Assembly (NCBI GenBank): GCA_026770705.1
Contig: JANJGN010000071.1
Coordinates: forward strand, 806,001 to 869,858
Direction: 5' to 3'
Source of the DNA: Isurus oxyrinchus
Lineage: Eukaryota
Length of the DNA: 63,858 nt
This document shows positions 10,930-58,280 of the stretch, one piece after another (position 1 is the first letter of the stretch; the number at the start of each line of letters is the position of its first letter). The notes under the pieces were generated by a model that had not been told where the DNA came from, did no database searches, and was given only the letters and a program-made list of their open reading frames with translations. The position numbers and the translations under genes are program-made.

Positions 10930-12609
10930 AACTGAGTGTGAAACGGGTAGAGGGGGTGAGGAGGTTTGTGGGTGGGGGCAGGGATTATGATTCCTTGGAG
11001 AATGAGACAACCCACTGGGGGAGAGGGGGAGAGAGGGAGGAAGGGACTGAATGGGTCTGTGGTTGGTGTGGTTTGGAATGAAATGTTTCCCCAGTGATGA
11101 CTTGATGCTGAGTCATTGGGGACAGAGATTCAGTNNNNNNNNNNNNNNNNNNNNNNNNNNNNNNNNNNNNNNNNNNNNNNNNNNNNNNNNNNNNNNNNNN
11201 NNNNNNNNNNNNNNNNNNNNNNNNNNNNNNNNNNNNNNNNNNNNNNNNNNNNNNNNNNNNNNNNNNNNNNNNNNNNNNNNNNNNNNNNNNNNNNNNNNNN
11301 NNNNNNNNNNNNNNNNNNNNNNNNNNNNNNNNNNNNNNNNNNNNNNNNNNNNNTAACTGCCTTTGTTAACTCAGCTTTTTGTCACCTTTCCCTAATATTT
11401 CATTACGTGTCTCAGAGATGGATTTATATGTGGTTAACAATCCCCTGAATAGTTTTGGGACAGGTTGCCACATTACGGGTGCTATATAAATGCAAGTTGT
11501 TGTGGAAAAATTGATCTGCCTCGATTCAGAATGGAAACACGGAGAATCCTTCGACAGGGCATGTGTGCAACAGGCTCGCAATAAATGCATTGCACGGCAA
11601 CAACTAAGCATGTCCTTTGATGCTGATGCATCCCAGTCCTGCTGTGTGGACACATCACAACCGAGGGACTGCCTGACTGCGTGCAGCCAACATGGCCAAA
11701 TAGTAATTAGCAGAAATGTGACATCACTGAACTTTGTTAACATTTCAGAGTGTGCTTTCTGAATTCTGCAACTAGTTTATTCTGTGATAGATTACAAGAA
11801 GCCTTTGCATTTTCTATAATATTACATTTATTGTCACAAGGGATTGAAATGCCCAGACAACTCTGTACAGATATATTTTTATTAAACATCTTACTCTGGG
11901 ACAACCTTCCTGCTCCAATCTGTTAATTCATGTCATTGCATTTCACCCCCCCAAATTATGTAAATTCATGTGTCCACATTTATCATGAAAATTTCCCATG
12001 TAAACATGTCACACTGTACTTACACTCTCTTGCCAGTGGTGGTGCTGTAAACACACCAAATTCTTTCTCAGAGATTGCAGGACATCTCCCAGTTGTCTTT
12101 ACAATATTATTAAGATACAGGGAATGGGGACAAGCTTCACACTGTGGTTACGATGTTGTTAAGACAGAGAAATGGTAATACCTCCCCCCACCCCCTCCAC
12201 AGAGTTGTGGGCAGGGTCAGTTCTGGCTGTGAGACCCCCACACTCATCCCACGCCCCCTGTTCATTTCCCCATCCCTGCTCTAACTTAGCGCTTTTAGAC
12301 GTGAAGTGCGGGGCCCACAGGAAAGTGTGGAAGGGCTGCCCATCGCAGCTGGAACAAGGAACCTGGCAAGTCACCCAGGATAGAATGGCAGAGTGGGGGA
12401 GGGGGAGCAGTGGGGTCAATATCCACATCCTCCACAATACCCCCATCACTGTGTCACTACCAAGAGGGAACATCAGTTCGAGACAGAGGCCAGAGTGTGA
12501 CCAACTGAGACAAACTGAGCCTGAAACCAGCATCAACCAGTGTCCCAGCAAATAAGGTCAGAGTAGGGGAAATGGGGAAAAGACAGAAAGGTTCTTAATC
12601 TGAATGCAC

Positions 12610-19600: not shown

Positions 19601-20067
19601 GGCCGAGTGATTGGTGATTCCTTAAACATTGAAGAGAGAATGAACACCAATCAGATTGAATCAGATTAGCCAATCAGCTGTGTTGAAGAGCAGACAGGAA
19701 TGTTAGGCTAATTAGTGATTCATGACGGTGATAATGGGGGGAGTTCTGAGGGCTCCTAATCCATTGTCCTGTCTTGTAAATCAGCACTGAATGGATCTCA
19801 ATTGGTGTGTCTTGTAGACACTGTGTTGGGACGAAGACTAGCTTCACTAAACAGGGTCCTGAGGACCATGAGCCAATGTAGAATGAACTTGTCCACTCCT
19901 GTGTCCAGGATTCTCTACCATCCATTGTGAAACCTTGGGGAGTTCCTTGTGTGTCCTGTAGATGGTCCACACTGCAGCCACTGTGCCCCAGTGATGGAGG
20001 GGGTGGATATCGAGTCTAGTGGATCTACAAACTATCCAGGGTTAAATATTGATATTTCTCTCCCCAG

Positions 20068-20436
20068 TTGGACTGTCACAAAAGTGGAAAGGTGACACTC
20101 CACGAGAGGTGTCAGCGCAGGAAGGTTCCTGTGTACAGATTCCATGTCATTACAGTTATCCAGCAAAATCTGAAAACCGACCGCGAGGTGGAGTCTGGTT
20201 TAATAATGAGGAACAGATTCCCTGGGCTCCCATTGTCTTTCACTCCAAGGATCACAGTCACGAGTTACCACGGTTCCACCATCGGACCCGGCTGTCAGGA
20301 GACCTGCAAGATGGCGACAGTTCCCTGATTATAAACAACATCAGACGGGAAGATGCAGGACCTTATTTTTTCAGAATAGAATTTGACAATGGTCCGAGCC
20401 ATAACTATTACCCTGTAACCCAGCTTCACGTTTCTG
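20068..20436 (+). CDS. Siglec-like gene B, V-set Ig exon (canonical Arg kept, E-strand Cys replaced by Ser)
   Basis: 369 nt with canonical splice sites. GSCVQIPC...GDSSLII...YFFRIE. Confidence 0.9.
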
Positions 20437-20836
20437 GTAAGTGCTGTGTTATAATTACTCGACAATTCACATTCAACACTCAATGGGAAATAACACAATC
20501 TGTGATGTTTACATATTAACACAAAACACAGCTTATTATAACACACTGTCTGATTCTCAATAACCTGGTGATAGCTTCCAGTTCTGTCCTAAAGCAACCT
20601 CTAATACTCACTTTAATATCAATGATGAAATGCATTGATTGTGTCCATTAATGGTATCAGGTTATCCACTCTCATCGATCTCTCTAATCCAGTTTAAAAG
20701 TCTTTCCTGATCATTGTAAACTCTCAGTTCTGATATCATCCTTGTAAAAGTGCTTTCTCGTGTGGGACTGTGGTTTCTATTTGAACTGATGCTTCACGTT
20801 ATATTTCTCTAAAATGATCCATTCTCTGTGTGTTAG

Positions 20837-39720: not shown

Positions 39721-41554
39721 TGGAATGCGAAGCTAGTCTCAGTAATGGTGACCATGAAACTAAGGCCAATTGTTACAAAAACCCATCTGGGTCACTAATG
39801 CCCTTTGGGGAAGGAAACCTGCCGTCCTTACCCATTCTGGCCTACGTGTGACTCCTGACCCACAGCAATGTGGTTGACTCTTAACTGGCCCCTGAAATGG
39901 CCGAGCAAGCTACTGAGTTATATCAAAACCCGCCACAGACCAGTCAAACCAGGCGAACTGCAGCACTTCGAAAAGGCAGCTCAGCACCCCCTTCTCAAGG
40001 GGTCAGTCAGGAACAGGTAACAAACGCTGTCCACATCCCGTGAAAGAATTTTGGTAAAAAGGTAGCCGTGTATCACCACCCACGGCCAGCGCCAACCCCC
40101 CCACCCCTACCTGATTGCACCAGTTTCAGATTACACCAGGTCAATGAACGGATAGAAACTCAAACCAATGAGATGAGCACAGAGCAGGATCAAGCCAGAG
40201 AGAGTTGGTGGGAAGAATTGGGAAAGCAACAAAAAAGGCAGAGCGGACACTAACACTATAACAAAGTAAAGACCAGAGGAGGAAGGAAGCAAGTGCGAAG
40301 AGGAATTGAGAGCAGAGCTGGTCGGCTGCTTGTCGAAGCCAAGGAACCTCCATAGGGCACATCCACAGTGCTGTTGGGGAGGGTGATACATGATTTTGAC
40401 CCAGGATCATCAAGTGTTGCACTGGCAGAGCCTTTAAAGTAAAGGAACCTTTACTACCCGTGCACCCCCCCGCCCTACAAAGCTGTTGACCTGCTGAGTC
40501 CACCTGTACAGGCAACCTCCAGACAGTTGGCTACAGAGGCCATTGCAGCTGCTGAATATGACTTCCAGTTTCAAACCCTTCATGAATGCAAGGATGGAGA
40601 ATTCAGCAGGAATATTCCTGCACATCCTGTGGCAGATCCTGTAAATAAAAGGGACCTTCACTCACTCCCCAAAGCTGCTGACCTGCTGATTCACATCTAC
40701 AGGCAACCTCCAAATAGTCAACTAGAGAAGACAACGCAGCTGCTGAATGTGACTCCTAGTTTTAAACCCTTCACTCTGGAAAGAAGGAATCCAGTGCAAT
40801 GGCCTCAGTATGATTCCTCACAGAAACTGATTTTAAATCTCATGTCTAAGTATTATTTTTCCTTTGCTTACATTTTAATCCCTGCACCTGATGGCTTTAT
40901 CGCTTCAACTTAAATAACTTTCAGCAGGAGCCAGGTTCAAATTGAATGGACAAGCTGGCTTGGGAGGCCAAAAGGCCTACTCCTGCTTCTGTTTATTTAT
41001 GTTGGTGTTGTTATGTAGTGGAACTAGAGAGGTTATAGCAGTTATGAGAACATTAAGCAAACAGCAGCAAGAATTGAACACCTACGTTGTGGTTTATGAA
41101 AAGGTTTTCAACCTGGTCAACTGGTAAAATCTGCTGAAAGTGGGCTATCATGGCGTGTGCCCTTTGTGAGATATTTGTAACAACGTTCTCGATGTCGGAA
41201 CAGCTTGCATTGAACAAAGCTGATCTTTACCCAGAACTTCAGAGGAAGGGGGGACAATTGTTCCCTGGTGTGGGGGGCATGGTGGGGGGGGAGGGTGAGG
41301 GAGAGACAAGTAGCCTGAAATACCAAGCCAGACACTTTGTGAAGACACAAGTTGTTTATTCATTTTTTTTCACAAATCATAATCTTTACAATTAAAGTCC
41401 CGACAAGATGATGGTGAATCATGAACACATTGTCGGGGTCAATCTGTGCCCGGGAGCATAAAGCAGCAAAATCAGGAGCCCGCTTTACATCACTCTGAAT
41501 TTTAACTATCATTAACCCCAGTAACATCCATTCAAATGACTTAGTCATAAGATT

Positions 41555-41708
41555 CCTCACACATTCACTTGCACACTCACACACCCACACCCACACAGAC
41601 ACACTGACACACTCACTCATTCACATTGACACACACTGACACAGTCACACACACCCACACAGACACACTGACACACTCACTCATTCACATTGACACACAC
41701 TGACACAG

Positions 41709-41746
<38 letters not shown>

Positions 41747-41905
41747 ACACAATCACACACATTCACATTGACACGCACTGACAGTCACACATACACACAC
41801 ACACGCTGACACAATCACACACATTCACATTGACACACACATATTGACAGTCACACACACACACACACACACACGCTCATAAAGACAGACACAAACACAG
41901 TCACG
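41555..41905. repeat. CA-rich microsatellite and minisatellite
   Basis: Directly visible. Confidence 0.9.
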
Positions 41906-42205
41906 TGAGGTGAATAGTGTCGATGTATTTAAGGGGAAGCTGGATAAACACATGAGGGAGAAATGAATAGAAGGATATGGTGATGGGGTGAGATGGAGAA
42001 GGGGTGGGCGGAGACTCGTGTGGAGCAGAAACTCCAGCATGGAACAGATGGGCCGAATGGTTCCTTTCCCTGCTGTAAAACGCAGGTAAAGTTTCAGTTG
42101 GAATTAATGAACAGGGCCTGTGTGAAATAGATTGCTAAGCAGTAGATAAGGAGGGGAGAGGCTGTGGCATGGTGCAGGATGACCTTGCGTGAATGAGGCC
42201 AGGGT

Positions 42206-42322
42206 CTAATATCTACAGCAGAGACCACAAGTCTCATTTGGTTCTCTCCAATTACAGCAGCTACAGCAGAATATGCAGAGCTGCTGTCTGTCCATTCTGT
42301 TCTGGCGCTGCAGCAAGGAGCC
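42206..42322 (-). CDS. HAMP: Hepcidin-type gene, exon 3 (pro-region end, RQNR cleavage site, 8-Cys mature peptide)
   Basis: Acceptor cttttccag|, phase 0. Reads GSLLQRQNRMDRQQLCIFCCSCCNWREPNETCGLCCRY*, matching the hepcidin pattern C-xx-CC-x-CC-x(n)-C-G-x-CC (human [25 protein letters not shown]). Confidence 0.93.
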   Translation of the reverse strand, partial: GSLLQRQNRMDRQQLCIFCCSCCNWREPNETCGLCCRY

Positions 42323-42409
42323 CTGGAAAAGCAGGAGGACAATAGGTGAGAACATTCCGGAAAGAAAGAAGGCATCATTTCAATCAGGCGCGTCATTGGA
42401 AGGAGGATG

Positions 42410-43020
42410 GCGCATTTCTATAGCGCCTTTCCCCTCCTCAGGATGGCCCAAAGTGTTCCACAGCTGAAGGAAGGACTTTTTCTGAAGTGAGCTCACCGCT
42501 GAAATGTAGGAAACGCAGCAGGCAATTCACGCACAGCAAGATCCCACAAACAGAAATGTGATAATGGCCCCGATTTTCAGTTTTTTACTAATGTCAGTTG
42601 AGGGATAAATGTTTGCCCCAGGAAAGCAGACATAACTGCATCCCATCCACCCCCCACCACCCCCTCCACACATACCCCCAACTCCTGACGCACTTCATTT
42701 AAATTGTGGCCATGGAATCCTCTACATCCATCTGAGAGGGCAGATGTTGTCTCAGTTTAACATCTCATCTGAAAGACAGCGCATTCAACAGTGCAGCACC
42801 CCCTCAGTACTGACCCTCCGACTGTGCAGCACTCCCTCAGTACTGACCGTCTGACAATGCAGCACCCCCTCAGTACTGACCCTCCGACTGTGCAGTCCCC
42901 CGCCGGTACTGACCTTCTGACAATGCAGCACTCCAAGACTGACTGTCTGACAATGCAGCACCCCCTCAGTACTGACCCTCCGACTCTCCTGCCCCCCCGC
43001 TGGTACTGACCCTCCGACAG
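42410..43020 (-). mobile_element. DeuSINE-type SINE (AmnSINE/SacSINE-like) with an internally amplified 32-bp unit
   Basis: gcacagcaagatcccacaaac...tgagggataaat...tgagagggcaga...catctgaaagacagc runs directly into the 32-bp array. Family name from memory of the consensus. Confidence 0.65.
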
Positions 43021-43294
43021 CTCGGTAATTTCTCAATTATGCCTGGTGGTCCTTTTAACTCAGAGCTGAGAGTTGCAGAGAATCGAGCAGACACCCTGAA
43101 CTGACACTTGCAGTGCAAGTACTGGGAGCGCGCTGGTCATTATCATGCTGCTGTCTGTGGGATCTTACTGTGCGCCAATGGCTGATTCTTTTCCCACAGT
43201 ACATCAGTGACCTCACATGAAAGAAAAAAAGCACTTGATTGTCTGCGAAACAGTTTGGGACGTCCTGATGTGTTGGAAGGCGCTAGAGAAATGC

Positions 43295-43446
43295 AAGAGT
43301 TGACGTTTCGAGTCCTCATGACCCTTCTGAGGACTCGAAACGTCAACTCTTTTCTTCTCCGCCGATGCGGCCAGACCTGCTGAGTTTTTTCAGGTAATTC
43401 TGTTTTTGTTTTGGCTTTCCAGCATCTGCAGTTTTCTTTGTTTTTA
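43295..43446 (+). mobile_element. Short Penelope-type element with an inverted 5' end (24-bp perfect hairpin) and 14-bp target-site duplication
   Basis: Arms 43295-43318 and 43328-43351; TSD tagagaaatgcaag at 43284-43297 and 43447-43460. Confidence 0.75.
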
Positions 43447-44723
43447 TAGAGAAATGCAAGTCCTCTTTGTCTTTCACTCGATCCTCTAAGGTGTCTGTTG
43501 ATTAACCAGTCTCTCGGTGTTTGATGTAGGCCTGGTTATAAACAGGTAGAAGGATCAAATATCAAAAATGCTTTGGCTGACAGTCAAACCGATTGTGCAT
43601 TCGGAGAGATTAGATACGGTCTGCACACAATGACTCCAGTCTCTGGCACTGACTGCCGCCTGGGGTCTCCCTTCCACATAACACTCACAACTTGCATTTA
43701 CACAGCGCCTCTGACATTGCAAAATGTCCCAGCCCACATTACCGGAGCGTAAATCAGAGAGAAGTCTAACACTGAGTCACATATGGAGATATTAGGGATA
43801 GGTGACCAAAAGCTTGGTCAAAGATGTCAGTTTTTAAGGAGCGTCTTAAAGGAGAGAGAGAGAGAGAGGCAGAGAGGTTAAGGGAGGGTATTCCGGAGCT
43901 CAGGGCCCCAGGCAGCTGAAGGCACGGCCACCAATGGTGGAGCGATGGGAATCAGGGGGACCCGGGAGATGCAGTAATGTCAGAGATTTTGGAGGAACAT
44001 CGGGACCGGAGGAGGTGTTCTCCTGCTCCATATCTCTCTCTCTCTTCCTCTCTTCCACTCCTCCTCTCCCTGTCTCTCTCTCTCCTACTCTTCCGCTCAA
44101 TTGCCCTCTCTCCCAATCTTTCTCTCCTCTCTCCCTTTTCCTGTCTCTCTCCCTCTCTCTCCCCTGTCTCCTTCTCCCACTCTGTATCTCTCCCTCTCTC
44201 TCACACTATTTTTGTACCTTTCGCTCACTCTGTAACTCTCCCTTCCCTGTTAATTTCTCTCTCTTGGACAATCTCTCTTCCCTTTTCACTTTCCCTCACT
44301 CTGCATCTCTTCTTTAATTTCTCCCTCTGTCACTCTCTCCCACCTATGTTCTTTCTCTTTCACCCCTCCCCGTCCCACTCTCTGTCTCTCTCTTCCAATC
44401 CCTCCCTCCCCCATTCCATCCCTCTCTCCGACTCTCGACTCCCAGCCTCTCTTTAACCCACTCCCAGGCTGGATCAGTCTCCCTCTCACTATTCCCGGCG
44501 TGGGTTACATTTAAAATTCCTGTGGGGATATGTTCACTTCCTTGGAATTGCCTCTTCCCAGCTTTGCAAAAAAAGTGGGGGTGGGGGGGGGGCTCGATTT
44601 CAAACATGCCTCCTGAGTATAACCGAGACAGACTGCCACTGAAATCAGCTTGAAATCAGAAAACTTTCTGTGGAAGAAACGAGCAGGGAGAAACCTTAAA
44701 ATAAGGAATGAATTTCCACCTAC

Positions 44724-44780
44724 CGTGTCCGGGGAATCCACAGATTTCTCAATAGTCGAAGAACCTAAAGCAGTGTCAAC
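44724..44780 (-). CDS. HAMP: Hepcidin-type gene, exon 2 (pro-region VDTALGSSTIEKSVDSPDT)
   Basis: Strong acceptor ttctttctttttgcag| and donor |gtaggt; 57 nt, phase 0 at both ends, as expected for the small HAMP exon 2. Confidence 0.75.
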
Positions 44781-44879
44781 CTGCAAAAAGAAAGAATTTA
44801 TCAGGGAGAAAGTGAGAGGAGGATTGAGGGAGAGGGAGAGAGAGAGAGAGAGGTACAGGAGAGAGAGGGGGAGGAGGAC

Positions 44880-45480
44880 AGACTTGCATTTCTCTAACGC
44901 CTTTCACCACATCCCAAAGCATTTCACAGCCACTGAAGGAGGTTTTTGAAGTGCACTCACACTGTAGGAAATGTGGCAGCTGATTTGTGCACAGCAAGAT
45001 CCCACAAATAGCAATGTGATCATGGCCTAGATCATCTGTTTTTGGTGATGTTGGGTGAGGGATAAATATTGGTGCCAGGACACCGGGGAGAACACCCCCT
45101 GCTCTTCCTCCAAATAGTGGCTGTGGGATCTTTCACACCCGCCCGAGAGGGCAGACGGGGGACTCGGTTTAATGTCTCATTCAACATTGTTGTGCTCCCT
45201 CAGTACTAACCCTTTGACACTGCAGCACTCCCTCAGTACTAACCCTTCGATAGTGCTGCGCTCCCACAGTATTGTCCCTCCGTCAGTGCAGCGCTCCCTC
45301 AGTACTGACCCTCCGACAGTGCAACACTTCCACAGTACTGACCCTGTAACAATGCAGCACTTCCTCAGTACTGACCTCCGACAGTATAGCACTCACTCAG
45401 TACTGTCCCTCCAATAGTGCAACACTTAAAAAACTACTGACCCTCTGACAGTGCAGCACTCCCTCAGCACGGAGTGTTGA
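44880..45480 (-). mobile_element. DeuSINE-type SINE with an amplified 32-bp unit
   Basis: L2-like tail gacttgcatttctctaacgcctttcac, then central domain, then 32-bp array. Confidence 0.7.
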
Positions 45481-45539
45481 CCGACGTTATGGGACTGAAT
45501 TCCGTGGAGTGAGACTCAGACCAGAGATTTAGGTAGGGT

Positions 45540-46430
45540 TGTTCCGGCTGGAGGAGGTTACAGAGATAGGGAGGGTTGTAGAGGCTGTAGGAGGTTACAG
45601 AGATAGGGAGGGATCTAGAGGCTGTAGGAGGTTACAGAGATAGGGAGGGTTGTAGGGGCTGTAGGAGGTTACAGAGATAGGGAGGTGAGTAGGGGCTGTA
45701 GGAGGTTAAAGAGATGGGGGGGTTGTGGGGGCTGGAGGAGGTTACAGAGGTAGGGAGGGTTGTAGAGGCTGGAGGAGGTTACCAAAATAGATACTGTTGT
45801 AGGGGCCACAGTAGGTTACAGAGATAGGGAGAGTTATAGTGTGGAGAGGACGTTATAGAATTCATGAGCATTGTAGGGGCTGGAGGAGGTGACAGTGATT
45901 CTGAGGGTCGTGGGGCCTGGAGGAGGTTACAGAGATAGGGAGGGTTGTAGGGTCTGGAGGAGGTTACAGAGATAGGGAGGGTTGTAGGGTCTGGAGCAGG
46001 TTACAGAGATAGCGAGGGTTGTAGGGTCTAGAGGAGGTTACAGTGATCATGAGGGTTGTGGGGCCTGGGGGAGGTTACAGAGATAGGTAGGGTTGTAGGG
46101 GCTGGAGGAGGTTACAGAGATAGGGAGGTTTATAGGGGCTGGAGGAGGTTACAGAGATAGGGAGGGTTGTAGGGGCTGGAGGAGGTTACGGAGATAGGGA
46201 GTGTTGTAGGGGCTGGAGGAGGTAACAGAGATAGGGACAGTTGTAGGGGCTGGAGGAAGTTACAGAGATAGGGAGGGTTGTAGGGGCTGGAGGAGGTTAC
46301 AGATATAGGGAGGGTTGTAGCGGCTGGAGGAGGTTACAGAGATAGGGAGGGGTGTAGGGGCTGGAGGAGGTTACAGAGATAGGGAGGGTTGTAAGGCCTG
46401 GTGGAGGTTACAGAGATAGGGAGTCGCTGA
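45540..46430. repeat. 37-bp G-rich minisatellite in hepcidin intron 1
   Basis: Unit gtaggggctggaggaggttacagagatagggagggtt, more than 20 copies. Confidence 0.92.
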
Positions 46431-46600
46431 GTAGGGATTGAAAACAAGAATGAGAATTTCAGGGGAAACGACAGAAGGAAATGATGTTAAATTCATAGAG
46501 GGCGACAATATTAAAGGCACGAACATAATAATATCAAACTGCGGAAGAGACCAGTCTATCTGGGTGGTAGACGTAGAGTCATGTGCAAGAAACACCTCAC

Positions 46601-46717
46601 CCAGAGGGACATCTCTTAGCTTAACCTCGGCAAGGAGAAGAAGTGACTCAGCTGCAGGGAGAGCAGCAAAGTCAGAGTGAACAAGACAAGTCGCCATTTC
46701 ATCTGGGAGCTTCCCAT
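46601..46717 (-). pseudogene. HAMP: Hepcidin-type gene, exon 1 (signal peptide) with an in-frame TAA
   Basis: Reads MGSSQMKWRLVLFTLTLLLSLQLSHFFSLPRLS*EMSLW|gtgagg; 117 nt, phase 0; TAA at 46616-46618; clear hydrophobic signal-peptide core. Confidence 0.78.
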
Positions 46718-46787
46718 CTCTGCCTGTCTCTTCTGATCTTCTGGCTCTGCTTTGATGCTTTGGTTTGTAACTAGAGGAGCTTCCTGC

Positions 46788-46978
46788 TCTTATACCTGAA
46801 ACACTTGAAGGGGACAGCCGGGGGCGGGTAGCTGTGTTGTATCACACCCATTTCTGGATATTGCAGTGTCGATGTTCCCTGTCCCACTGGCCTGGGACCA
46901 GCAGTAAGGTCACTGGGACATTGACTGTCTGGCGCCGAGAACTATCAGTCCCTCCGCAACGCCCTTCACCTTGTGCAA
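46788..46978 (-). promoter_or_regulatory. Putative hepcidin proximal promoter
   Basis: TATAAGA on the minus strand at 46788-46794, GC box at 46821-46828, GGCGCC (BMP-responsive-element core) at 46931-46936 next to GTCT, and C/EBP-like TTGTGCAA at 46971-46978. Confidence 0.6.
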
Positions 46979-47166
46979 ATATGTGTTCATATTGACGCCA
47001 CACAACGTAGCAAAAACATAGGGGCTGGTTCTTATGTCGGCAAATCAGGTGAACCGCACGCCCCCTAACCCATTACTCCTCTCATTGCTACACTTACTAT
47101 TTTACAAATTGTGTGCGTTGCTTTTATTTTGGACAAGGGGCCTCGAGGGGGAACTGATTTACAATT

Positions 47167-47350
47167 TGTAACCTCCTCCAGCCCCTACAACACTCCTTAT
47201 CTCTGTAACCTCCTCCAGCCCCTACAACCCTCCCTATCTCTGTAACCTCCTCCAGCCCCTACCACACTCCTTATCTCTGTAACCTCCTCCAGCCCCTACA
47301 ACCCTCCCTATCTCTGTAACCTCCTCCAGCCCCTGTAACCCTCCCCATCT
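47167..47350. repeat. 37-bp minisatellite, inverted relative to 45540-46430
   Basis: About 5 units of tgtaacctcctccagcccctacaaccctccctatctc. Confidence 0.9.
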
Positions 47351-47734
47351 CTTGAAGGGTTCTCAAAATTTCCAACTGTCAAGGAACCCTGGGTTGGTGA
47401 GCGTGACCCCTGACCTCTCCTAGTGCAATTTAGTTAGGGTTTGGGGGTGGGACAAGGGTAAGGGCATTAGTAGCGTGATTCTCCCTCGTTATGCCGTGTG
47501 TTCCCTATTCTTAACTCAGTGTACTTTGTAAGTCTGTATAATCTCAGTGTCATCCTAATGTTAGAAGTTCATTTGTGACTTCAGTAAACTCAGTTTTTGT
47601 CTTGCACCAAAACCAGTTGTCTGCTGCACTTTGTGACAAGCCCCGAATAAGTCCAAGGTCTAGAACCCAGGGATTGGGAGTGATTCAGATGGCTCAGAAG
47701 TCGCAGGTGAAGCTGACACACACCACCACACCCT

Positions 47735-55248: not shown

Positions 55249-56004
55249 GTGAGTGTACACAGACTTCAACATCTCTCACACACACACTCACACATGCAAA
55301 AACACTCATGTGTAGACACAAACATGCACGCTTACACACAAACATACGTTCAAACACATACACAGAAACACACACAAACTCAACTCANNNNNNNNNNNNN
55401 NNNNNNNNNNNNNNNNNNNNNNNNNNNNNNNNNNNNNNNNNNNNNNNNNNNNNNNNNNNNNNNNNNNNNNNNNNNNNNNNNNNNNNNNNNNNNNNNNNNN
55501 NNNNNNNNNNNNNNNNNNACAGACACGCGCATACACACAAATACAAACTCACATGCAGAAGTACACACACAAGTGTGAGCTCCCTCTCCTCTCTCAGTTC
55601 TGCACTGGAGTCATGGTATCAGCTCCCATTCTGTGCTGAAGGAAGGTAAACTCCAGATCAGCAAGACCCTGAATTGGATGAGCAACCTCCTGAACAGAGA
55701 AATGTAGATTTAGCCCTCAGTGCTCCATCGATCAAATACAATTCATTGCCTATCAAGCCCTTGGGGACATCTTGAGAGTGTTAAAGGATGTTTCTTTCAT
55801 TCTAGAGGGTTAGCAACTCTACTGGTGGGAGGAAGCAACTGCAGTGTGACAGTTTACATAGGAAGTGTCCATTATAAATATGACAGTAATTTTTCATGAG
55901 GGAAGGTACCTGGAAAAGCATTCCAACATCAGATAGAGAGAGATGATGCATGGAGTCTTGCTGTGCACTATGCTTGCTCACATTAAAATCTTTATTTCTT
56001 TTAG

Positions 56005-56285
56005 ACGCACCCAGAATCTCTCAATTCATTCTCTTGATATGATTAACGCTTCATCGATCAATATAATTGAGGGGAATTCTGCAGTGATAATCTGCTCTGT
56101 CGAGAGCTTCCCAGCTTCTAACCTGATGTGGCGACATCTTAATGTCCCAATGAACAGAACAAGTTCCAACAATGAGCTGTGGTTGGTGATTCCTCACGTT
56201 ACATCCAGGGACACTGGAGACTATCAGTGTGTGGCAGAGAATGAACATGGAGCAGTGGAGGGGTTCATAACCATCACTGTGGAAC
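56005..56285 (+). pseudogene. Gene D, Ig exon copy 2 (1-nt deletion, frameshift)
   Basis: 281 nt instead of 282; gcacccagaat versus gcaccacag(a/g)at. Confidence 0.7.
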
Positions 56286-57084
56286 GTGAGTTACTGCAAA
56301 CTCCAACATCACTCACACATACACACACACACACAGACACACACACACATACACACACACACGCACACACACACAGACACACACACACAGACAGAAACCT
56401 GTAGGCACACACATGCATAATTATCCACACACAGTCATACACATACAAGCATATACACAGGAAAATACACACCCATCTCAAACACACACACACATTCATG
56501 CCCACACATAGACACACACATGCACATACTCTCACTCATGGACAGACCTAGACACACAGACACATGCGCATGCGCACACACAGACACATGTGTGCATACA
56601 CACACAAACACACTCACATGTGCAGAAACACAAACAAACAGATACACACACGTGAGTTCCCTCTCCTCTCTCAGTGCCGCACTGGAGTCTTGGTATCAGC
56701 TCCGATTCTGTGTTGAAAGAAGGTAAACTCCAGATCAACCAGACCCTGAATTGGATGAGCAACCTCCTGAACAGAGAATTGTAGATTTACCCCTCAGTGC
56801 TCCATCAATCAAATACAATTCATTGCCTGTCCAGCCCTTTGCGAAATCCTGAGGATGTGAAAGCAAGCTTCTTTCATTCTAGATGGACAACACCTCTACT
56901 GGTGGGAGAATGCAACTGCAGTGTGACAGTTTACATAGGCAGTGTCCATTAAAAATGTGGCATAAGACGTTATCCTGAGGGAAGTTACCTGGAAATGCAT
57001 TCAGACATCAGATACAGAGAGATGATGCATGGAGTCTTGCTGTGCAATAGGTTTGCTCACATTAAACACTTGATTTGTTTTTAG

Positions 57085-57366
57085 ATGCACCACAGGATCT
57101 CTCATTTACTTCGCTTAATATGATTTACGCTTCATCAATCAATATAATTGAGGGGAATTCTGCAGTGATAATCTGCTCTGTCGAGAGCTTCCCAGCTTCT
57201 AACCTGACGTGGCGACATCTTAATGTCCCAATGAACAGAACAAGTTCCAACAATGAGCTGTGGTTGGTGATTCCTCACGTTACATCCAGGGACACTGGAG
57301 ACTATCAGTGTGTGGCAGAGAATGAACATGGAGCAGTGGAGGGGTTCATAACCATCACTGTGGAAT
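57085..57366 (+). CDS. Gene D, Ig exon copy 3 (intact)
   Basis: Bounded by ttag| and |gtgagt, 282 nt. APQDLSF...EGNSAVIICSVESFPASNLTW...DTGDYQCVAENEHG. Confidence 0.85.
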
Positions 57367-58183
57367 GTGAGTGTGGAGATACATTTGTTTGTTTGTTGTC
57401 TCCGTGGTCTCCATGGAGCCATTGGGATCGTGTTGTTTTTAATCCAGTTTTCTTCAATCCTCGCTCAGTCCACGTTATCCACACATCCAATTTTTCCTCT
57501 CCCTTTCTGTTTTTGCTCTCAGTTTCTCCTTCAATGGTTGTCAGGACAAGGCTGTCAGGTCTTCGTTTCCAATCTCCGTACTTGACGACCTTTCTCTCTC
57601 TAACTGTCCTGAACAACCCTTTTAATTGCTGAACTTCTCATTCTTTAATTGATAAATATTATATATAAATGTTACATGGATTACTTTGAAATGCAACACC
57701 TGTATTCATAAATTGCTTAGAAATTACTAAACATTCAACAGCCAATGCAGCATTATCGAAGTGAGCTCACTGTTGTAATGTAGGAAACACAGGTACTGAT
57801 TTGTGCACAGCAAGATCCCGCAAACCACCGTGTGATAATGACCTGATAGTTGATTATTTCAGTGAGGTTGGTTGTTACATGTGTAGAGACTACATACCCT
57901 TTAGGGAGGGAAGCATGTCTCGATGTGGATGTGACTCCAGTCTCAGACACCAACATGGTTAACTCTTACCTGCCCTCTGAACTGGTCTCCCAGTTTGGGA
58001 CAAACCAGTGGTTCAGGAGGAAGACCCCCCACCACCATCTCAAGGGGAAACTAGGGATGGACAATAAATGTCAGCATTGCCCGAGAATGAGTATTTAAAC
58101 ATTGAGTGAGTGTATCGCTTCTCGAGATACATCGGAGCATCATTGTAAATCTGTAGTGCAGTAATTAATGGCTGTTTTTACAG

Positions 58184-58280
58184 GTAGAGACTCCAGTAAA
58201 TGGACAGTAGGATTGTTCACGGCTGGGATCATGTTGAGTGTTTTCCTGGCTGGAATCTTCATCTTCATCTGTGTGAGAAA
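58184..58280 (+). CDS. Gene D, transmembrane exon
   Basis: Identical by eye to 8363-8459. Confidence 0.87.

Follow-up and report, generated by a model that had tools for sequence, protein, structure and literature searches.

The window, by which we mean the whole 63,858-base stretch of DNA analysed here, contains a minus-strand gene of the hepcidin family whose predicted mature peptide carries an enlarged loop between its fifth and sixth cysteines. Hepcidin serves vertebrates as their master iron hormone, and to our knowledge there is little documentation, bony fish aside, of how it arose and first diversified. With somewhat more confidence than doubt, we read the gene in the window as a silent duplicate that belongs to a fast-evolving subfamily of expressed long-loop hepcidins, a subfamily standing beside a canonical hepcidin. 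The long-loop peptide type itself is a real, expressed and new variant of the hepcidin family. Coordinates of the features are collected in Table 1.

Table 1. Features of the long-loop hepcidin gene, in window positions, with the evidence for each.
Feature	Position	Strand	Evidence
Exon 1, coding part, 93 nt, MGSSQMKWRLVLFTLTLLLSLQLSHFFSLP(R), signal-peptide-like	46625..46717	minus	translation
Donor lesion, TT versus GT in organism B	46623..46624	minus	window sequence; X13 contig
Intron 1, TT..AG in window letters	44781..46624	minus	X1 junction
Exon 2, 57 nt, VDTALGSSTIEKSVDSPDT, prodomain	44724..44780	minus	translation; X1 depth 144,302 (bin 44660-44843)
Intron 2, GT..AG	42323..44723	minus	X1 joint 42321>44723 (cut +1), CT..AC on plus
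Exon 3, coding part, GSLLQRQNR + 29-residue peptide + TAG	42206..42322	minus	translation, RNA joint, Pfam
Convertase site R-Q-N-R	42296..42307	minus	sequence
Predicted mature peptide, 29 residues, 8 Cys	42209..42295	minus	translation and scripted count
Cys5-Cys6 loop NWREPNET, eight residues	42230..42253	minus	translation; 4-residue gap in human loop on alignment

Judged from its sequence, the stretch that encodes this peptide is the last exon of a hepcidin-family gene. Minus-strand translation of 42206-42295 yields MDRQQLCIFCCSCCNWREPNETCGLCCRY followed by a stop codon; the interval, which the sequence-only reading had singled out, thus covers the mature peptide and nothing more of the gene. 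Six residues precede Cys1, and the eight cysteines fall at residues 7, 10, 11, 13, 14, 23, 26 and 27 with gaps of 2, 0, 1, 0, 8, 2 and 0 residues (scripted count), that is, in the pattern C-x2-CC-x-CC-loop-C-x2-CC near the C-terminus. The Pfam Hepcidin profile (PF06446) matches the 38-residue exon-3 product at 29.1 bits against a curated cut-off of 27, aligning 33 residues with 29 profile positions, and the 49-residue open reading frame scores 28.6 bits. Additionally, the CC.CC pattern occurs a single time when the whole window is read in all six frames. Because the Pfam score lies above the curated cut-off and the CC.CC pattern is single, the hepcidin match is not a matter of chance.

Alignment with known structures places the novelty in the loop. 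In a HMMER comparison with PDB chains, human hepcidin (1m4f) aligns with every cysteine in register and with C-I-F-C-C identical, and a four-residue gap opens in the human loop; the PDB-chain matches have weak E-values (0.98), as one expects with targets of 25 residues. The cysteines likewise align with those of human and bass hepcidin, the loop being the sole longer part. Exact translation and the gap against 1m4f therefore bear out the earlier description of a 29-residue peptide with eight residues between Cys5 and Cys6 where the human peptide has four. Human hepcidin-25 (HAMP; PDB 1m4f, 2kef and 6wbv) shares the C-x2-CC-x-CC...C-x2-CC framework, the C-I-F-C-C segment and the six residues before Cys1. 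The human arrangement of three exons, the third of which encodes the peptide, is also that of the gene type described here, but is doubtful for the window copy. The window peptide differs from it in having a loop of eight rather than four residues that carries a sequon, a net charge of 0, no equivalent of His3 or Phe4, and RQNR as its convertase site.

The gene lies in a neighbourhood of the Siglec/MAG type. Mammalian HAMP adjoins the Siglec gene MAG, and the hepcidin gene in the window sits among Siglec/CD22-like immunoglobulin genes. Specifically, open reading frames with V-set and Ig_CD22 matches lie at 4509-4979 and 20049-20519 (32.8 and 34.5 bits, cut-off 27), and those at 55943-56404 and 57075-57632 match Ig C2-type families. 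The V-set/Ig_CD22 exons at 4509-4979 and 20049-20519 are near-identical to each other, and two identical 26-residue hydrophobic stretches, met as chance tblastn matches, occur on the plus strand at 8362-8439 and 58183-58260. The sequence evidence points to duplicated Siglec-like units flanking the hepcidin gene on both sides. Six runs of N, together 1,234 letters, fall within 6081-7162, 11135-11353 and 55388-55518.

Searches for relatives returned little. Blastn and tblastn of the three exons, together with the CC.CC pattern, revealed no second hepcidin exon in the window. A protein homologue search with the 57-residue stop-free reading of 42209-42379, scored over residues 18-57 and covering only proteins of about 31-100 residues, found none that shared three 5-residue words, and phmmer with the exon-3 product (38 residues) matched none of 1.84 billion representatives at E<=0.001, a level that so short a query can hardly reach. 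In the ESM Atlas, the top match (0.75) belongs to a plant cluster, which is noise, and no relative was found there. An AlphaFold2 single-sequence model has a mean pLDDT of 65 and two helices, and is meaningless for a disulfide hairpin. These database searches used exon 3 rather than the joined three-exon product; exons 1 and 2 were compared with the window only. Full-text literature searches, for which subscription journals lie mostly outside coverage, returned neither a cartilaginous-fish hepcidin gene nor a glycosylated hepcidin. A single line in one paper mentions hepcidin as detected in nurse shark plasma (PMC9207270).

The exon structure was defined with contigs of four runs, placed on 41900-47400 at a likeness of at least 90%; depths are family totals, not values per copy, and contig-based RNA evidence drops rare variants. 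Run X1 comes from organism A and is taken as RNA; X5 and X13 come from organism B, X13 being DNA-like. X1 is treated as RNA because it contains spliced joints and because its exon depth exceeds its intron depth by 100 to 1,000 fold. Specifically, X1 word depth is 128,000-817,000 in the exon bins (41900-42451, 44660-44843 and 46500-46867), with 140,520 and 128,332 in the bins of exon 1 (46500-46867), as against 650-1,400 in bins over the introns, for example 43004-43187, 43556-43739, 44292-44659 and 46868-47051. The exon-3 acceptor reads cag/GGC at 42324-42323 in the context ttttccag/, and the 3' UTR continues below 42206. The intron-2 joint 42322/44724 is present in nine X1 contigs (depth 2,474.9), and a variant of it in one X1 contig (13,927.5) and one X5 contig (24.1).

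For intron 1, upstream of the exon-2 acceptor tttttgcag/ that ends at 44781, three kinds of X1 contig bear on the junction: seven with a loose end behind 44781, four with a joint 44781>46631 and five replaced letters (9,817.4), and one with a joint 44778>46625, two replaced letters and skipped ends AC..AA (766). All three read ...GAGG and then GTTGAC, so that exon 1 ends at 46625 and exon 2 starts at 44780. An exon 1 extending to 46601, with an in-frame TAA, was rejected on the ground that the RNA junctions end the exon at 46625, and the TAA at 46619-46617 is therefore intronic. The sole GT of the window near this boundary lies one base upstream (46625-46624). A donor AG/GT at 46626/46625 used with the acceptor 44781/44780 was likewise rejected, as it gives 266 nt with a stop at codon 36 and as the RNA contigs carry one extra G. 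Joined at the RNA-defined junctions, the exons keep an open frame of 88 codons (script). Exon 1 begins with an ATG at 46717 and contains a hydrophobic stretch, read by eye as a signal peptide. The three-exon layout of signal peptide, prodomain and exon-3 peptide thus holds for the gene type and is doubtful for the window copy, whose own intron 1 reads TT..AG.

Several further elements surround or interrupt the gene. A TATAAGA box at 46788-46794 on the minus strand, about 70 bases upstream of the ATG, would fit a compact promoter. Ahead of exon 1, an X1 contig carries 15 letters behind 47089 that the window lacks. On the other side of the gene, the stop codon is followed by its first AATAAA at 41360, and a long CA-rich microsatellite, built of degenerate units about 60 bases in length, occupies 41540-41880, just downstream. 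One X1 contig (844.4) joins the exon-2 donor to an acceptor near 43531 (43530-44723, minus; CT..AC on plus), a minor alternative or cryptic splice. Interspersed repeats in both introns, at 42636-43003, 43188-43555 and 45212-45579, attain word depths between 10^5 and 10^6 in each of the four runs, those of organisms B and C among them, and are probably SINE-like elements common to these species.

The window copy departs from the expressed type at its convertase site and several coding letters, and from organism B at its intron-1 donor. Where the window has TT, the X13 contig has A>C on the plus strand at 46624 (1,454.3/1,454.3), which makes GT on the minus strand; no X1 contig spans 46624, and the comparison donor GT comes from organism B (X13). 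At 42299, the other letter accounts for 564,748.6 of 574,465.9 in X1 (window letter 1.7%) and turns RQNR into RQKR; the same G>C on the plus strand is found at 24.1/24.1 in X5 and 404/404 in X13. At 42261, 369,314.6 of 371,490.6 carry the letter that changes Ser12 to Asn (window letter 0.6%), and at 42273, 236,631 of 286,712.3 carry the one that changes Ile8 to Arg (window letter 17%). The minimal RQNR site, reported earlier from the sequence, is thus a property of the window copy and not of the type, for which RQKR makes up 98% of the RNA depth and is found in organism B; Ile8 and Ser12 are in the same way letters of the window copy that are minor or rare in RNA. Given the TT boundary, the RQNR-weakened convertase site and the rarity of the window letters in RNA, the likeliest reading of the window copy is a duplicate that is silent or in decay.

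The residues before the Met of the window peptide are R-Q-N-R, within the exon-3 lead GSLLQRQNR. This tetrapeptide lacks the basic third residue of RX(K/R)R and still matches the minimal R-x-x-R. Cleavage after the following R-M-D-R, which would leave a QQL start, is disfavoured: organism B offers no further R-x-x-R at that point, the site in common is RQKR, and a cut at RQ(N/K)R leaves the family-typical six residues before Cys1.

A functional window copy would require the T at 46624 to be polymorphic or wrongly assembled, or the TT..AG intron to be removed all the same, and would add an RQNR/Ile8/Ser12 isoform. We consider this unlikely. It would be in keeping with a frame that is otherwise open over its 88 codons, with the TATA-like box upstream, with X1 intron contigs that match the locus at about 99%, and with the window letters in X1 at depths of about 2,200 (42261), 9,700 (42299) and 50,000 (42273). 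However, we know of no working TT splice donor, organism B has GT at the same place, and depths of about 1,200-2,200 are near the level of the unspliced contig over exon 3 (1,236).

The probable silence of the window copy does not extend to the long-loop subfamily, which is spliced, very strongly transcribed (about 10^5 depth) and equipped with the standard RQKR site. At 42280, 42284 and 42291, X1 has zero other letter at depths of 411,000-440,000, so the abundant RNA starts MDRQQL; the His-free start described earlier for the window peptide is therefore confirmed by translation and carried by the RNA as well. Because RNA with this same N-terminus is spliced and reaches a depth of about 10^5, the long-loop peptide type is not a product of pseudogene drift. 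The loop codons contain no substitution or indel in X1 or X13 among the differences listed. X1 intron contigs differ from the window by 21 letters in about 2,030 (about 1%), and the three junction variants, together with the mixed letters, imply that X1 contains more than one expressed copy or allele.

Comparison with organism B shows where the type varies. X13 contigs differ from the window by 46 letters in about 1,514 (about 3%). The contig over 42070-42491 has 14 other letters, 11 of which are listed, and between 42261 and 42309 it differs by eight substitutions and two one-base indels, of which the deletion is at 42288 and the insertion behind 42292. By hand translation it reads RQKR, then M-S-Q-H-Q-F, then C-R-F-C-C-N-C-C, and among the differences listed it keeps all eight cysteines and the loop length. 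The patch of 49 nt thus holds eight substitutions as against 3 to 6 in the 373 nt elsewhere (Fisher one-sided p 2.4e-6 to 3.3e-5, for a patch picked after the data were seen), and all but one of the eight are protein-changing (hand translation). At 42287-42293, the deletion and the insertion lie four bases apart and can be read by hand as a compensated frameshift in codons 2-3 that replaces S-Q by D-R; an ungapped reading would take six substitutions. In intron 2, organism B also carries 22 letters behind 42370 that the window lacks.

Loop length thus appears to be kept over about 3% divergence, and the N-terminal half and the cleavage site to vary, with conservation known only between samples 1% to 3% apart. 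The pattern in the patch resembles the outcome of diversifying selection, or of conversion by a different copy, rather than uniform decay. According to the sequence-only reading, orthologues with a canonical short turn and a QSH-type start would have reduced the atypical features to pseudogene drift. Organism B does have a His in its start, M-S-Q-H-Q-F, but no short turn, since no loop indel is among the differences listed; drift applies in part to the window copy, with its copy-specific RQNR and no GT at the intron-1 boundary, and not to the type, whose spliced RNA reaches about 10^5.

A canonical hepcidin appears to accompany the long-loop form. One X1 contig follows the window to 42293 and then departs, with 30 loose letters displayed. 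After the ATG, these letters translate by hand as S-H-L-S-I-C-M-Y-C-C, giving M-SHLSIC-MY-CC with cysteines at 7, 10 and 11, as in the window peptide. The sea bass Hamp1 peptide given in PMC5665920 agrees with it at S2, H3, L4, S5, C7, C10 and C11. On the evidence of this one contig of 30 letters, an ordinary iron-type hepcidin is probably also present in the animal.

Charge and N-terminus set the window peptide apart from the classical activities of the family. It has three basic and three acidic residues, a net charge of 0, a pI of 5.9 and no His (script), which upholds the near-neutral charge claimed earlier and lacks the net positive charge of a cationic antimicrobial peptide; the dominant RNA form with Arg8 comes to +1 (hand count). 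Its MDRQQL start, without His and with Gln at position 4, departs from the DTHFPIC and QSHLSLC starts of iron-regulatory hepcidins, which bear a His and a hydrophobic residue at position 4; hepcidins of that type bind ferroportin, trigger its internalisation and respond to iron and inflammation by induction. The N-E-T noted earlier in the NWREPNET loop is indeed a sequon, and the sole one of the peptide by scripted count (residues 20-22, 42230-42238). It lies nine residues from the C-terminus and is flanked by disulfide-forming cysteines, and sequons that late in a protein are modified inefficiently. N-glycosylation at N-E-T is putative only and uncertain.

Among teleost hepcidins, Hamp1, with its QSHLSLC start, belongs to the same family and has the same six-residue N-terminal length; the X1 sister transcript M-SHLSIC-MY-CC resembles this type, whereas the window peptide has no S-H-L-S motif. 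That motif reportedly confers iron-regulatory activity, to go by the title of a 2021 paper by Chen et al. Teleost Hamp2, which comprises diversified, multi-copy hepcidins of the defence type, offers a parallel, as it likewise stands beside a canonical copy and has a divergent, fast-evolving N-terminus with amino-acid-changing substitutions. PMC5665920 gives a loop of five residues for sea bass Hamp1 and also for sea bass Hamp2, and states that Hamp2 does not regulate ferroportin; in the same vein, second fish hepcidin genes are described in PMC8235187 as having no part in iron regulation. Positive selection and six copies are described for the large yellow croaker in PMC6240063, which also confines Hamp2 to Percomorphaceae and Ovalentaria. 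Given that confinement, the likeness of Hamp2 to the window type arose independently; membership in the teleost Hamp2 clade is unlikely, and the likeness is functional only. The window peptide further differs from Hamp2 in its net charge of 0, which is not clearly cationic.

An altered function of the long-loop peptide is plausible. We propose that the long-loop prepropeptide would be secreted and cut after RQKR (RQ(K/N)R), and that the mature peptide would fold by four disulfides into a hairpin. In section 5 of PMC8235187, the variable loop of hepcidin is described as largely extracellular, with both termini buried in ferroportin. The enlarged loop, possibly glycosylated, may thus point away from a ferroportin-like partner, and the peptide would be a poor or weak ferroportin ligand owing to its changed N-terminus, which lacks His and is polar at position 4. 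The long-loop form would then be a diversified sister of canonical hepcidin, as teleost Hamp2 is beside Hamp1. A net charge of 0 argues against both a classical cationic antimicrobial peptide and a Hamp2-like membrane-active role.

A bolder version of this proposal holds that cartilaginous fish possess a large, very highly expressed subfamily of near-neutral long-loop hepcidins with an N-glycosylated loop, which act neither by ferroportin degradation nor by cationic membrane attack and whose N-terminal half is under diversifying selection. We regard this version, taken as a whole, as distinctly unlikely. If true, it would provide the first glycosylated hepcidin, and long-loop hepcidins might, for instance, modulate one of the two ferroportins that these fishes have, serve there as a decoy, or act through a new receptor.

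Alternatively, the long-loop peptide could be a working iron hormone matched to a divergent ferroportin, a reading that we find very doubtful. Very high RNA depth is what would be expected of a liver hepcidin, the six residues before Cys1 as well as C7, I8/R8 and F9 are kept, and the altered loop is the part that lies outside ferroportin (PMC8235187, section 5). The same review also reports, for some cartilaginous fish, a second ferroportin with a different residue at the hepcidin-binding Cys. Against this, a transcript with the standard SHLSIC start occurs in the same sample, the long-loop peptide has no His and a polar position 4, and its N-terminal half is strongly different at about 3% divergence, unlike a conserved hormone-receptor interface. 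The earlier suggestion of a ligand co-evolved with a divergent ferroportin is not supported, given the X1 contig that reads M-S-H-L-S-I-C, itself one loose end.

It is highly improbable that pseudogene drift accounts for every atypical feature and that the long-loop type as a whole lacks function. The donor lesion and weakened convertase site of the window copy and the lack of a database relative (protein homologue search, phmmer) speak for this reading; against it stand spliced RNA that has RQKR and an open frame and reaches a depth of about 10^5, eight cysteines and a loop length kept in organism B, and substitutions clustered in one 49-nt patch rather than evenly spread.

The window copy, read as a silent duplicate within a transcribed subfamily, illustrates birth and decay within the hepcidin family, and is of smaller significance than the subfamily to which it belongs. 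If the subfamily is as we propose, a split into an iron hormone and diversified sisters would have arisen here independently of the teleost Hamp1/Hamp2 split. The long-loop form beside a canonical one would, in addition, offer a natural test of how much weight the loop and the N-terminus carry in ferroportin binding.
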